64,000 nucleotides of DNA from sequence record LC727698.1; one strand, written 5' to 3'. This document shows, in pieces, positions 47,280 through 52,789 of this stretch. Numbering within the stretch: the stretch's first letter is position 1; the number at the start of each line of letters is the position of its first letter. Below the pieces are notes generated by a model, which saw only the letters and a list, made by a program, of their open reading frames with translations, had not been told where the DNA came from and did no database searches. Both the position numbers and the translations under genes were made by a program.

Positions 47280-47410
47280 GTTTTGTTAACCTTTTATATA
47301 CCTGTTAAATTTTACATTATTTAGTTAATTTTATACCCATATAATACTGTCGAGATAAATATGTGTGTAGATAACTTATAGCATTATTTTTAACGATTTT
47401 AGTACAATGG

Positions 47411-47439
47411 TTGACAGTATTAATATCGTATGCTATAAT
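47411..47439 (+). promoter_or_regulatory. Consensus sigma70 promoter with extended -10
   Basis: TTGACA-N17-TATAAT with TG at -15/-14; no ORF of 60 aa or more follows for 1.35 kb. Confidence 0.9.
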
Positions 47440-47445
47440 CCGCAA

Positions 47446-48410
47446 CATAATAAAACTAAAGAACGTATGTAACAAAACAGACGTTCTCCTAAGTGTTTTA
47501 AAGTTTTTGCTTAGGAAGACCCAGTTGTATGTTTAAAGGGTGAACGGTAACGGGCATTCTTGTTTAAGACTAGTTCTTATGAAGACATTGGCAACTAACA
47601 TAGCAGCTTTGTTCCATAATTGGATATTGGTAGTAGAAACTATCCCCATCGTGCCTTTACTGTAGTACCGTTAGAGACGGAGATAACGCAGGAAAAAAGG
47701 TTATTTAAATTATGATTTTGGGTGCTGCAGAACACTTTCGTAAACAAAAGGAATATAGTTTACGTATACACAACGGGAACGGGAAAAAGCTTTTTAAGCA
47801 AAAACGAGTCCCTGGTAATTGGTGTTTAACGGGAGTGACGTCCCAAATGTTATTCATCGATTAACACTGTAAGAAGGTTGTAAGGGTTATTGTGTTCGAA
47901 GTGGTTTACACAACTGTTCTTCCTACATTTATGTACAGAAGTGTAAACGAAAGGATGTTGCTCTGGTAGAAAAAGATCAACGTACTTTATGACACTATCC
48001 TTGTGACATATGTACTTGTACCAACAACAGCCGCAGGTTACGGATATGGTATTACAAACTGTACTGCGGTTCCGGGAGTTGAAAGTGGATGTTAGCTTAG
48101 GTGGCTGTTTGCTTAATTATAATGTTTAATTTAGGCAATATAAGCGTCGGGTGAGGCTTTCGTAGGTTGCGTGTTTATGCTACGGTGTAAATGGGCTAGA
48201 CTACTGGCGCATACATGAGTATTGTAGGATTGGCGCTTTAATAAAGAAATTTGTTAAAGTTTGAGTTTAGCTCCCCGCTCATTAGCAATAAACGTTGCTA
48301 GTCGATAGTATACCCACGCCTAAATAATGCCGTCATTGTTTAGTTTTTTTAAAAAATATAATTGTCAATTATATGTCGTACGCATCTACCCCGAAAAGGG
48401 GTAGATGTTT
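47446..48410 (+). ncRNA. Candidate large structured non-coding RNA (~960 nt), family unassigned
   Basis: Strong promoter, no ORF, raised GC with G>C, many local and long-range helices, closing hairpin CATCTACCCC/GGGGTAGATG. Confidence 0.65.
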
Positions 48411-48792
48411 ATGACTTTCGTTTACACTCATGTCATAATCAGTACACGCCATTTTAGGCCATTCTACATCAATACACTGCTAGAAGCAGTGTATTGGACA
48501 TACAAAATAATCTTAAATTATATCAAATTTGTTTAATTACTTTAATCTTGTTACTTTAGTAACTTGTATTTTGTTTATATGAGTTGTAGTTTACGAAAAC
48601 GAATATAAACAAAATACATATGTGAACTGTAGTTCACATACTTACTAACGTTGTATATTACGGTAATTCTATAAAATATCTCTATATAATTATAAACGTT
48701 TTATGGCATACTACGACTGAACGAAATTGAAAATTAACTAGAGATTTAATTAGATAAATAATATTGTAAAAATTGTATAGAGGTATACATCA

Positions 48793-49245
48793 ATGAACGA
48801 TTACACACATTACACAGAGGAAGATTTCATATTTTTAGCATATGATTTAAATACTCAGCTTATAAATGATGGATATCCTGACGCTGCTGTAAAATTTATT
48901 ACTAATCAGTTTATTTTAGAGCATAGACATCCTGACGAAATAAAACGTTGTATAGGATGTAATTCTAAAATGTACGAAGATGTTATTGCTACTAAGAGAA
49001 ATTTATCTGGTAAATCGCATTGCAGACATTGCGAATCGAAACTTAGTATGTATAAGGAAGTTGTTAAAGAAGTAGCAAATACAACACAAATACTTCGCAT
49101 ACCAGAAAAACATTTAAATTCAGTTAAACGATTAATTAGAATATATAATGAGCAAAACAAAACTAGTGCATATCAGAGTATATTAGTTAAAACAAAGAAA
49201 CTTAACACAGGAGTTTCTAAAAAGTCAAAAAGAAAGGGACGTTAA
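48793..49245 (+). CDS. Hypothetical protein with CxxC...CxxC zinc-finger and basic tail
   Basis: CIGC...CRHC; GAGG RBS; GATAAATA at 48754-48761. Confidence 0.75.
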   Translation: MNDYTHYTEEDFIFLAYDLNTQLINDGYPDAAVKFITNQFILEHRHPDEIKRCIGCNSKMYEDVIATKRNLSGKSHCRHCESKLSMYKEVVKEVANTTQILRIPEKHLNSVKRLIRIYNEQNKTSAYQSILVKTKKLNTGVSKKSKRKGR

Positions 49246-49260
49246 TTGTCCCTTTCTTTT
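49229..49260. terminator. Bidirectional intrinsic terminator
   Basis: AAAAGAAAGGGAC/GTCCCTTTCTTTT between convergent genes. Confidence 0.8.
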
Positions 49261-49487
49261 TATAGGAAGCTTCTACCTGTTTCTGCTTCGATTTTTTGTT
49301 TAATAAATTCTCCTAAACGTACCCGCTCTTGATATGATAAAGACCAAGCAGTGTGCCAGTCAAATCCATTAATTTTATCACATATTTGGACTATTTCGCC
49401 TTCTAATCCCAGTGATTCTTGTTCATATTCTTGTATAACGTTCCTAATATCATCTGGGGTTCCCGATACTAGGATTCTCTGAAAAAA
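49260..49487 (-). CDS. -1 frame extension of the gp26-like gene (gp51/gpT-like chaperone part)
   Basis: 73-codon open frame with no ATG/GTG/TTG, entered at slippery T-TTT-TTC (49487-49481). Confidence 0.7.
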   Translation of the reverse strand, partial: FFQRILVSGTPDDIRNVIQEYEQESLGLEGEIVQICDKINGFDWHTAWSLSYQERVRLGEFIKQKIEAETGRSFL

Positions 49488-50323
49488 CTTACTGGGTTAA
49501 AATCTACAGGTACTACAAAACTTTTATTACAGTTGTCGCATACTGCATCAAAGTCGCCATTAACTCCTACTTGATTTATTTCTTTTAAAAGACTATCTAT
49601 TTTATTAACATCTGCTCTATCTATATTTGCTATAAATTCTTTTATATCAGCCAGTGTCTGAGGAGTATTATTAACTATATCTATACCGTTAGTTTCATCT
49701 ACAATACGAACTATTGTTTTTGCAATTAATTCGAAATTTAATGATGACAGTTCATTTATTGTGTTAGAAAATGCAGAAAGTTTTTCTTCATCTGAATACA
49801 TATCGCTTTGCATTATTCTAATAAATTTTGCTTGTTCTAATGCAGTTTTTGCAACTGTCATATTATCTGAAAAATCATATGGTCTAATAAATATAGATAG
49901 ACCGTTATCAAGATTCACGACGTATTGATCTTCTAAATAAGTAGACGTATTAATAACATTTAATAAGTCTATTCCATATAAATTTTTATGATTACAATGC
50001 GGGCACGTAGAAGAAATATCTATTGTGTTACCGTATGATGCTGCTTTTATAGCAACACATATCATATGAATGTCATTAATCAAGAGTTTATTTACATCTT
50101 TAATTCCCGGTACACAACTCTTAATTACTTCTTTTAAGCCTTCACCGTTCACTAATGCATCAGGATTTTTTATTAATACTTCATCTTTTCCTGTCATAGC
50201 ATATACCCCTAGTTCTCCAGAATCGGTGTATTCTACAACATTTGATGGATAAAATGAATTTCCGCTGGGCAAACGAATATAAGATTTGAATGTTCTGTAA
50301 TATTGATGTAATTTGTTGCTCAT
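49469..50323 (-). CDS. gp26: Baseplate hub assembly protein, gp26-like
   Basis: YI.LPS....Y, MT.KDE...KNPDAL.NG, CP.C and C..C motifs. Confidence 0.8.
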   Translation of the reverse strand: MSNKLHQYYRTFKSYIRLPSGNSFYPSNVVEYTDSGELGVYAMTGKDEVLIKNPDALVNGEGLKEVIKSCVPGIKDVNKLLINDIHMICVAIKAASYGNTIDISSTCPHCNHKNLYGIDLLNVINTSTYLEDQYVVNLDNGLSIFIRPYDFSDNMTVAKTALEQAKFIRIMQSDMYSDEEKLSAFSNTINELSSLNFELIAKTIVRIVDETNGIDIVNNTPQTLADIKEFIANIDRADVNKIDSLLKEINQVGVNGDFDAVCDNCNKSFVVPVDFNPVSFFRES

Positions 50324-50392: not shown

Positions 50393-52789
50393 GTGGCAGA
50401 AGATATTAGAATTGTTGGCGTTGATCCTAGTGTCCCAGGCTGGGCTAGAGAAGAAACTCTTAATAAAATAGTATCTGAGTTAAAAAAACTCAATGGATCT
50501 AATACAAGAGAAAACGACGAACTAAAAGATGCAGTAGATGAACTAGTTAGGGTAACCCGTAGATCTAACGAAGATACATCTAGAACAGATAATAATACTG
50601 AAATAAAAGAAGCATTAAATAGATTATCTTCTTCGTTAAAACAACAGAAAAAATCTGATAATTCTTTATCTGCAAAGCAAGGGGGAAACAAACCTCCCGT
50701 ATTGCCGCCTGACAATAAGAAATCTAAATTAGATACAGATACTATAGGCGCATTTATTACTGCCGTCGGTACTGCTTCAAAGGCAGTAGCAAAATTTACT
50801 TTAAGTATGGCATCTTTTGCAGTTGGCGGAAGTATATATGCTGCATTAAAGCAAGCTGCATCGTCGCAACTTACTTTATCTAGAGATTTATATAAATCAG
50901 GTTGGAACTTCGGAACGGTATTAGACGATGCATCTGGTATTATTAAATCTACCAACTTAGACGGTATTTCGTATGCCATAAAAGGTTTAGGTATAAATTC
51001 ATCTGCACTATCTGAAGTATTAAAAGGCAATGAATTAGCAATACAAAAATACGGAATAAAATCGTTTGTAGATTTGTCTTCTAGCTTAAAAAGACAAGGC
51101 AATAGCTTAGGTATGTCTTTAAAAGAAACAGCAGATTATGTAGGAGAATATTTAGAATCTCAACGTTTAATGGGTACATTTGATAAAATGCGCCAAGTAA
51201 ACATGACTGCCCTTGCATCTAAAGCACTTAAAGATACCCAAGCATTTGCTACTGCATTAAGAATGTCTACAGAAGACCTTCAGGCAAAAATGAATGAAAG
51301 TTTAAAAGATGTAGACTTTCGTGTAGCAATAGAATCAGTTAACGCAAATTCTAAAGAAGCCGCCGCCCAAATTTATGCCGCTTTGCCGGAACAATTGCAA
51401 ACTATGTTTAAGGTAGCTCTTAAAGATACTCCGTCTTTTATGGCATCCAAAGAATACGCCGATTTAATAAAATCCGGGCAAGGAGAATTAGCTAGACAAA
51501 TAATTGCAGTATCATCTGGACTGAAATCTGGTAATATAACTAACGGTCAGGCAGATGATGCAATGAAACGACTTATAAAATCTACTAGTTTTGCAGAAAG
51601 TACAATGCGTAGACTTGCTATGCTAGATGCTCGTGGACTAATAGATAGTAATGTTGCTGCTGCTGCGTATGGATTAAAAGACCTTAGAGATAAAATGGAT
51701 GGTCATTATGAAGGAATCCAAAATACAGAAGCTACAAATTTAGCAAAAGTTGAAGATGTAAGAAATAGAGCATTAGCTGTATTAGATACGTTTGTATCAT
51801 CTATAATGAGGGCAGGATTCGAATCTGATGAATTTGCTAAATTATTAGATAATGCAAATGAAATGTTAAAAACAATTCATAATACAGCAGAAGACTTAGG
51901 TAAACAATTAGGTCCGGAATTATTTAAATTTGTTAACAATGCTATGGAATATCTAAATGGTTTATTTAGTAAAGATGTAGCAGGAAATATAAATGTAAAT
52001 TATTCTAAAATAATAGGAGATATTTTAACAAGTTCCGGTGCTGCTATAGTAGTTGGCGTTCTTGCTATTATGACTACATTTAAAGGTGTTGTTATTTCTT
52101 CGTTATCGTCGTGGCTTAAAGGTGCATCAGGACCTATGTCATCATTAGGTGGCACCGTAAAAACTATAGCAGGAAGATTAGGGGCATTTGCAGCACTAGC
52201 AGTATCGTTTACAAATGGAATAGGTAGATTAAGTCAATCAATTTCGGAAGGCGGCGATGCAATAGAATCTTCATTGAATTTTTTATCGGGCGCCGGCGAA
52301 GGTATAATAGATCCTGTGTTTAAATCCCTTACATGGGCAGCTAACAAATTAGGTATAGTATCTGATGAAGCAGCAGATGGATTTAGTAAATACATCAGTG
52401 ATACTAATTTGCAACAGTTCTTGGGTCTACAAGATATACCTATAAAAGTAGAAACTACTAATAAACCTGCATATACACCGCCTGGACCTACTGCTACTAA
52501 AACATCTGCATACGGTAAAATAGAAACTCCGAAAGCTCCTGCTATAATTCCTACAGCTCAGCCAGATGTCGCAGACGCAGCAAAACAAAGTCCTACTCCT
52601 GTAGATCCTACTAGCAATATAAAGCCTATAGAAAATACAGGAATGAGTTCTCAAGACATGCTAAATAGAAGTACAGATAAACTTATACGTTTACAAGAAG
52701 AACAAATACGACAGTTACAAGAGCTTGTAGATATTCAGCGCAGAGCATTAGCTGCTACTAGAGAAACTGGATTTACAAGAACTAGGTAA
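50393..52789 (+). CDS. Tape-measure-like protein
   Basis: 798-aa Ala/Ser/Lys-rich helical protein with hydrophobic Gly-rich segments; late promoter; adjacent to the chaperone gene. Confidence 0.55.
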   Translation: MAEDIRIVGVDPSVPGWAREETLNKIVSELKKLNGSNTRENDELKDAVDELVRVTRRSNEDTSRTDNNTEIKEALNRLSSSLKQQKKSDNSLSAKQGGNKPPVLPPDNKKSKLDTDTIGAFITAVGTASKAVAKFTLSMASFAVGGSIYAALKQAASSQLTLSRDLYKSGWNFGTVLDDASGIIKSTNLDGISYAIKGLGINSSALSEVLKGNELAIQKYGIKSFVDLSSSLKRQGNSLGMSLKETADYVGEYLESQRLMGTFDKMRQVNMTALASKALKDTQAFATALRMSTEDLQAKMNESLKDVDFRVAIESVNANSKEAAAQIYAALPEQLQTMFKVALKDTPSFMASKEYADLIKSGQGELARQIIAVSSGLKSGNITNGQADDAMKRLIKSTSFAESTMRRLAMLDARGLIDSNVAAAAYGLKDLRDKMDGHYEGIQNTEATNLAKVEDVRNRALAVLDTFVSSIMRAGFESDEFAKLLDNANEMLKTIHNTAEDLGKQLGPELFKFVNNAMEYLNGLFSKDVAGNINVNYSKIIGDILTSSGAAIVVGVLAIMTTFKGVVISSLSSWLKGASGPMSSLGGTVKTIAGRLGAFAALAVSFTNGIGRLSQSISEGGDAIESSLNFLSGAGEGIIDPVFKSLTWAANKLGIVSDEAADGFSKYISDTNLQQFLGLQDIPIKVETTNKPAYTPPGPTATKTSAYGKIETPKAPAIIPTAQPDVADAAKQSPTPVDPTSNIKPIENTGMSSQDMLNRSTDKLIRLQEEQIRQLQELVDIQRRALAATRETGFTRTR

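Follow-up and report, generated by a model that had tools for sequence, protein, structure and literature searches.

Probable programmed -1 ribosomal frameshifting in the baseplate hub gene of Pseudomonas phage 30-3 and related jumbo phages

Pairs of chaperones coupled by a frameshift are a hallmark of how long-tailed phages are assembled. The T4-type phages have seemed to be an exception to this, and what gp26 and gp51 do in the assembly of the T4 hub has long been puzzling. Both T4 proteins are listed as hub assembly chaperones (PMC3004832) and the -1 frameshift pairs of the gpG/gpGT type known from phage lambda are found in many phages with long tails (Xu, Hendrix and Duda 2004, reviewed in PMC5009743). 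Here we describe a hub gene found in a stretch of 64,000 nucleotides (nt), hereafter referred to as the window, which corresponds to bases 1-64000 of Pseudomonas phage 30-3 (LC727698.1) with 100% identity and the same coordinates. This phage is a PA5oct-like jumbo phage in the family Arenbergviridae, genus Wroclawvirus, and ten other PA5oct-like jumbo phages were found to be 98.5-99.9% identical to the 30-3 region. We consider it very probable that a programmed -1 ribosomal frameshift at two phenylalanine (Phe) codons allows this one gene to give rise to two forms, a short one resembling gp26 and a long one resembling gp51. No prior description of the frameshift was found in the searchable literature, the coverage of which is incomplete, or in the annotated records inspected.

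The hub gene of phage 30-3 and its -1 frame

The zero-frame hub gene (49469..50323, minus strand) encodes a protein of 284 amino acids (aa), which was identified from the list of open reading frames (ORFs), Pfam, PHROG, family alignments and an AlphaFold model. The protein matches PF12322 (T4_baseplate) over residues 38-282 with an E-value of 3.2e-25 and 89.5 bits, the gathering cut-off of this family being 24.5 bits, and it also matches PHROG 150 'baseplate hub' (E 3.9e-23). In alignments of its relatives, four cysteines (CxxC...CxxC) never vary, nor does the Phe-Phe pair that closes the domain. The AlphaFold (AF2) model has a predicted local distance difference test (pLDDT) score of 90.3, and a Foldseek search of BFVD with this model gave 75 matches at E <= 0.001, with template modelling (TM) scores of up to 0.89, to proteins from many myoviruses that are named as baseplate hub subunits or assembly proteins. 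Neither a sequence match nor a fold match was found in the PDB. The gene had been described as gp26-like in a sequence-only reading of the window, which agrees with the PF12322 match and with the end of the gene soon after the Phe-Phe pair. A count with family hidden Markov models (HMMs), including one that recognises both T4 gp26 and gp51, found one PF12322-type gene and one extension ORF in the complete 284.5-kilobase (kb) genome of phage 30-3. Some members of the hub family are labelled 'Lead, cadmium, zinc and mercury transporting ATPase' (Yersinia phages fHe-Yen9-03/04) or 'ribosomal protein S27E' (several JGI proteins), names which are probably mis-annotations triggered by the CxxC...CxxC pattern.

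The two conserved Phe codons form part of a slippery heptamer, T_TTT_TTC (49481..49487, minus strand), which is aligned with the zero frame as X_XXY_YYZ and precedes the stop codon by three codons. The -1 ORF (49260..49496, minus strand), recognised from the sequence, the family alignment, the pattern of selection and an AF2 model, opens after a TAA at 49499-49497, is closed by a TAA at 49262-49260 and is without any ATG, GTG or TTG. The 73 codons past the slip site (49481-49263) constitute the predicted C-terminal extension, which is modelled by AF2 as a three-helix domain with a pLDDT of 77. The predicted products are therefore a short form of 284 aa and a long form of 354 aa, the latter consisting of the first 281 residues in common with the short form and the 73 residues of the extension.

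A candidate stimulatory hairpin (49442..49474, minus strand) was assigned from its folding energy and z-score and from the presence of stems at a like offset in relatives. Its stem (49474-49465 / 49451-49442) has 10 base pairs with one G-U, plus three inner G-C pairs, and it begins 6 nt past the heptamer; the folding energy is -14 kcal/mol with a z-score of -2.3 over 66 nt, and ViennaRNA gave a z-score of -3.0 for the 60 nt downstream of the heptamer. An intrinsic terminator hairpin (49226..49262, minus strand), found in a terminator scan as 15 pairs followed by a T-run, directly abuts the stop codon of the -1 frame and not that of the zero frame, an arrangement that is repeated in the related contig L083. 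Rfam had no match at the site or anywhere in the window. The heptamer, the stem, the startless -1 frame, the terminator and both product sizes are thus all present where the sequence-only reading had placed them.

These features suggest a mechanism. Most ribosomes would stop at the zero-frame stop codon and release the 284-aa PF12322 protein. A fraction of ribosomes, which the hairpin 6 nt downstream probably slows, would slip back by one base with both Phe-tRNAs on T_TTT_TTC, and these ribosomes would translate 73 more codons up to the TAA just ahead of the terminator. The 354-aa product would carry the first 281 residues joined to a small helical tail domain, which is the architecture of gp51. 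By analogy with lambda G/GT and T4 gp26/gp51, the two products may act as a fixed-ratio pair of chaperones for the assembly of the hub, or possibly of the tape measure.

The records of PA5oct, MIJ3 and Cassandra annotate the hub gene but leave blank the 223 bases that separate it from the next gene, and in Rak2-like records the extension is cut short, as the sequence-only reading had anticipated in proposing that gene callers would miss it. In the record of phage vB_Pa-PAC2 (L087:1200-1331), a 43-aa ORF annotated over the -1 extension, on the other strand, is probably a spurious call occupying the gap left by annotation.

Conservation of the slippery site and the -1 frame, and folding of the downstream segment

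A tblastn search with the hub protein gave matches in 97 phage records, and these all belong to jumbo phages of the Rak2/121Q/GAP32/CBB/Atu_ph07/XacN1 kind. A total of 81 relatives could be evaluated, comprising twelve from GenBank (25-31% protein identity to the phage 30-3 hub protein), 67 from IMG/VR and two other contigs, with an overall range of identity of 25-56%. Every one of the 81 has a -1 ORF of 70-79 codons that is open across a canonical heptamer, which is T_TTT_TTY in 78 of them and A_AAT_TTT in the remaining three. Conservation of the heptamer and of the -1 frame in homologous jumbo-phage genes was the check to which the sequence-only reading had been open, and no relative without a heptamer was encountered in this set. 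Together with the selection acting in the -1 frame and the startless ORF, the comparison strongly supports the claim of a programmed -1 frameshift.

In all twelve GenBank relatives the hub gene is followed directly, on the same strand, by a small annotated ORF of 40-76 aa that lies in the -1 frame relative to it. The opening of the -1 frame in these genomes lies 1-16 nt upstream of the Phe-Phe pair, the heptamer is T_TTT_TTC (T_TTT_TTT in XacN1), and the conserved -1 peptide starts right past the heptamer, upstream of most of the annotated start codons. The IMG/VR scan added 68 further loci, 67 of them evaluable, and 66 of these have either T_TTT_TTC (56 loci) or T_TTT_TTT (ten loci). The zero-frame tails at these 66 loci are 1-11 residues long and unconserved, and the -1 extensions have 70-79 codons. 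The lone IMG/VR exception, contig L015, and in addition contig L084 carry A_AAT_TTT, which is also canonical, stands in the correct register and is followed by the same -1 ORF. In this subclade (L015:2290-2570, L084:3800-4075) one slippery site has thus been exchanged for another in nature. Its hub proteins are approximately 40-46% identical to that of phage 30-3, with a domain that ends in Asn-Phe-Ser; for the L084 protein (P0092) the contig collection has index entries in 43 blocks, and 24 contigs were read.

The closest relative outside the PA5oct-like group is contig L083, with a hub protein of 56% identity. It has T_TTT_TTC and no canonical start codon before codon 49 of the extension, and its extension (55% identity to that of phage 30-3) has diverged to a like extent as its hub protein.

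Constraint at the nucleotide level is concentrated on the heptamer. Across 62 distinct sequences, entropy is zero at all six T positions, compared with 1-2 bits in the flanks. The first Phe codon is TTT throughout, and the codon preceding it, although variable (Ser, His, Asn, Tyr, Asp, Ala and others), always ends in T. A requirement for Phe-Phe in the protein is by itself insufficient to account for the T-run, because T4 gp26 encodes the same pair with TTC TTT and has a closed -1 frame. Past the heptamer, variability follows the coding periodicity of the -1 frame, being lowest at codon position 2, then 1, then 3, and this coding conservation begins at the heptamer, upstream of most start codons. 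An alignment of 38 extensions runs from the first to the last residue with few gaps. Between Cassandra and phage 30-3 the extension contains three base differences, all three of which are synonymous third-position changes in the -1 frame, and the ratio of nonsynonymous to synonymous substitution rates (dN/dS) against L083 is 0.16 in the -1 register as against 0.79 and 2.42 in the other two.

Searches with the extension itself retrieved little. A tblastn search of 50,697 phage records with the 73-aa sequence returned only the eleven PA5oct-like genomes, in which the extension is identical, and the T-run is the same in the three of these that were compared at the nucleotide level. An exhaustive phmmer search of 1.8 billion representatives found three small ORFs only, a word-indexed protein search found nothing, and scans of Pfam, NCBIfam and PHROG assigned no family to the extension. 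The 120 best-scoring of 224 hub homologues are 276-301 aa long, and an in-frame fusion of the two parts was found neither among these 120 nor in the search of the 1.8 billion representatives. Homology of the extension to the small ORFs of the Rak2-like phages is visible only through synteny and alignment. Rak2-like GenBank records (e.g., PHROG 18291, GAP32_242 and 121Q gene 595) contain the same ORF as the -1 frame of phage 30-3. Their annotated internal starts, which hide the link to the hub gene, drop up to 36 conserved codons (in Atu_ph07 the last 40 are kept), whereas the ORF in phage 30-3 is startless and so has been left unannotated. The Rak2-like records in which the extension ORF has been called as an independent 'hypothetical protein' include L006:3367-3543, L008:3367-3543, L014:3220-3429, L005:3430-3552 and others.

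The segment downstream of the heptamer tends to be structured. The 49 nt past the spacer are more stable than control windows from the same genes, with a median percentile of 0.12 and 45% of the sequences in the lowest decile (Wilcoxon 9e-7, uncorrected for relatedness). The 5' arm of the stem begins 6-7 nt past the heptamer in most sequences, and the stems of phage 30-3, L083, L084 and L015 differ in sequence but occupy the same place. The hairpin of phage 30-3 is clear and its relatives are on average more structured than the controls, but they do not have a consensus stem in common.

Comparison with T4 gp26/gp51 and lambda G/GT

Genes 26 and 51 of T4, the genome of which was taken under the accession given in PMC2993671, are divergent neighbours (L085:7803-9229). 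Both T4 proteins match PF12322 over the whole domain, gp26 with residues 1-206 (8.8e-64) and gp51 with residues 1-201 (3.9e-52), and they are therefore paralogues of each other and members of the same family as the jumbo-phage hub protein. The two proteins differ at their C-terminal ends. T4 gp26, a hub subunit or chaperone of 208 aa, stops three residues past the conserved Phe-Phe, just as the zero-frame hub product stops about 3-4 residues past it, while T4 gp51, a hub assembly catalyst of 249 aa, runs in frame for 48 more residues past the equivalent Phe. This gp51 tail is covered by the precomputed Pfam label PF28602 on gp51 homologues; no such precomputed label is recorded on the small ORF of L084.

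In 91 gp51 homologues the tail opens with a strongly conserved Lys-Leu-Leu-x-Asn-Pro-Asp-Glu-Val/Ile, which resembles the start of the -1 extension; in outline the gp51 tail opens with Leu-Leu...Pro-acidic-Glu-Ile/Val and ends with Met-x-Pro...Arg. An hhalign comparison of the extension and gp51-tail family profiles was collinear from end to end apart from one 12-residue deletion, with a score of 23.8, a P-value of 1.3e-4 and a probability of 54%. The scores of 200 column-shuffled controls had a mean of 9.9 (standard deviation 2.0) and a maximum of 17.6. The extension HMM was weakly positive against gp51 tails (best E 6.6e-5), and comparisons of the extension or the hub protein with the single T4 gp26, gp51 and gp25 sequences by BLAST, HMM and hhalign gave nothing significant. 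Homology between the gp51 tail and the extension is thus only moderately supported by the family profiles, and the short product probably has the architecture of gp26 and the long product that of gp51, i.e., a PF12322 domain followed by a C-terminal tail. The label 'gp51-like' given to the downstream frame in the sequence-only reading can be retained in the sense that the extension is collinear with the C-terminal tail of gp51, but not in the sense of a likeness to gp51 as a whole.

Several differences separate T4 from phage 30-3. The two T4 proteins come from separate divergent genes that involve no recoding, and the TTC TTT codons for Phe-Phe in gene 26 are non-slippery. The gp51 tail is about 25 residues shorter than the jumbo-phage extension, and the jumbo-phage hub domain is about 75 residues longer than T4 gp26.

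The likeness to lambda G/GT lies in the arrangement. In both systems a -1 slip at a heptamer near the 3' end of a tail-morphogenesis gene gives, or in phage 30-3 would give, a short product and a C-terminally extended product with a common N-terminal part. The zero-frame tail past the slip site is short and unconserved in both, and the arrangement is kept across very divergent phages although the sequences are not. However, lambda gpG is small, whereas the phage 30-3 protein consists of a 280-aa PF12322 domain that contains a zinc ribbon. Unlike lambda G/GT, the hub gene of phage 30-3 is not situated directly upstream of a recognised tape-measure gene but diverges from the gene of a 798-aa structural protein. 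Homology to tail assembly chaperones was not found at the level of Pfam or NCBIfam families or of PDB folds; a PHROG scan gave a sub-threshold match to PHROG 15960 alone (E 0.015), and a fold match of the extension to a 'tape measure chaperone' had an E-value of 0.74. The proposed gpT-like character of the extension and its link to the G/GT system accordingly hold as an analogy of design only, the searches having shown no likeness to tail assembly chaperones in sequence or in fold.

The 798-aa virion structural protein (50393..52789, plus strand), assigned from the annotated regions and a CBB homologue, is encoded beside the hub gene in most of the GenBank relatives examined. Its gene lies between the hub gene and a T4-like portal gene, and Ala, Ser, Leu and Lys are prominent in the composition of the protein. 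Neither Pfam nor PHROG assigns it to a family, and when it was considered as a tape measure its best BLAST match to the T4 hub region was gp29, the tape measure of T4, at a non-significant E-value of 3.8. The CBB homologue of the 798-aa protein is abundant in virions, and the hub protein is absent from the list of CBB virion proteins (PMC5259590).

On the other side of the hub gene, a convergent plus-strand ORF (48793-49245; 150 aa, family unassigned) ends within the terminator hairpin of the hub transcript, and the terminator at 49226-49262 is probably bidirectional. Further along, the window contains a stretch of approximately 1.5 kb (47280-48790) with several hairpins and without any ORF longer than about 50 codons, within which a 26-nt near-palindrome is located at 48565-48618.

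Alternative explanations and biological meaning

The same sequences could in principle be read in other ways. The downstream ORF might be a separate small gene, translated through reinitiation, coupling or a non-canonical start, with the T-run reflecting a mere need for Phe-Phe. All twelve GenBank relatives are annotated in this manner, 20 of 63 loci have a canonical start within approximately 10-12 codons of the heptamer, and Phe-Phe is conserved even in T4, where no slip occurs. The first 12 codons of the other 43 loci, however, contain no canonical start, and in phage 30-3, where the ORF is startless, and in L083, which has no start before codon 49, the ORF is nevertheless under purifying selection. 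None of the 20 early starts is preceded by a Shine-Dalgarno-like motif (generic 4-5-mers), conservation and periodicity set in at the heptamer and not at the starts, and the downstream frame is -1 in all 81 relatives and in every case continues open back over the heptamer. In the jumbo phages the Phe codons are fixed, as is the wobble base that precedes them, in contrast to the TTC TTT of T4. We therefore regard a separate gene as improbable.

Slightly less probable still is transcriptional slippage, in which RNA polymerase would stutter on the T-run and some of the mRNAs would gain a base. It would be expected to give the same two proteins and an identical pattern of conservation, and the homopolymer has six Ts, with at least seven in 10 of 66 IMG/VR loci. 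Runs of six are short for efficient slippage by bacterial polymerases, which speaks against this explanation, and the A_AAT_TTT clade has only five Ts yet still fits X_XXY_YYZ in the correct register. Moreover, the heptamer is always in register for two-tRNA slippage and the structure begins 6-7 nt downstream, the spacing expected for ribosomal frameshifting; it is from such features that we infer the slippage to be ribosomal. Finally, the extension might be the decaying remnant of a once-separate gene, or the product of an assembly error in the homopolymer, with the 284-aa protein alone being made. Although the lack of a start codon, the unannotated PA5oct-like records and the absence of a proteomic note on the gene would fit this, eleven independently sequenced PA5oct-like genomes have an identical extension, the Cassandra changes and the low dN/dS against L083 indicate selection on the -1 frame, the extension and the hub protein diverge alike, and no homologue with both parts in one frame was found. 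An error in the T-run, which the sequence-only reading had named as a possible source of the pattern, is excluded by these genomes and by the lack of an in-frame homologue, and we consider a remnant very improbable.

Several observations nevertheless weigh against a programmed ribosomal frameshift. The early starts in about a third of the relatives, some of which overlap the hub stop codon, mean that separate translation of the small protein is possible in those phages, and since Phe-Phe is conserved as protein throughout the family, T4 included, the T-richness is partly protein-driven. With respect to the RNA, an ungapped alignment of 62 sequences gave an empty consensus structure in RNAalifold, with no single hairpin across clades, and 71% of the downstream segments are individually non-significant. 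The arms of the stem also overlap conserved -1 codons, such that protein and RNA constraints are inseparable. Because of this overlap and the lack of a single consensus structure, the stimulatory hairpin is likely rather than demonstrated. The homology to the gp51 tail is weak, given that the single T4 gp51 sequence was detected neither by HMM nor by hhalign, and a fold search with the extension model was uninformative. In addition, the PA5oct hub protein record carries no mass-spectrometry note, and the literature consulted makes no mention of a frameshift.

A programmed -1 frameshift at the Phe-Phe codons remains by far the most probable explanation in our assessment, and its consequences reach beyond phage 30-3. 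Throughout the jumbo T4-related clade that includes PA5oct, Rak2, 121Q, GAP32, CBB, Atu_ph07, XacN1 and many uncultured relatives, a single recoded gene apparently specifies both forms, which would link gp26 with gp51 as two forms of a single protein and provides a concrete hypothesis for their division of labour. Annotation can be corrected in roughly a hundred genomes, in which the extension is either missing (PA5oct-like phages) or truncated to a 'hypothetical protein' (elsewhere). The T_TTT_TTY and A_AAT_TTT sites, which form a large natural set and differ in their downstream hairpins, should also be useful for the study of bacterial frameshift signals. More tentatively, a recoded short and long pair could be the general design of T4-type hub, or perhaps tape-measure, chaperones, with gp26 and gp51 being the same pair split into two genes. 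If this is true, the fixed-ratio two-product logic of lambda G/GT would extend to T4-like contractile tails, by convergence or very deep ancestry, and the roles of gp26 and gp51 could become readable from their common domain, which would bind a common partner, and from the gp51 tail, which would bind a second one.

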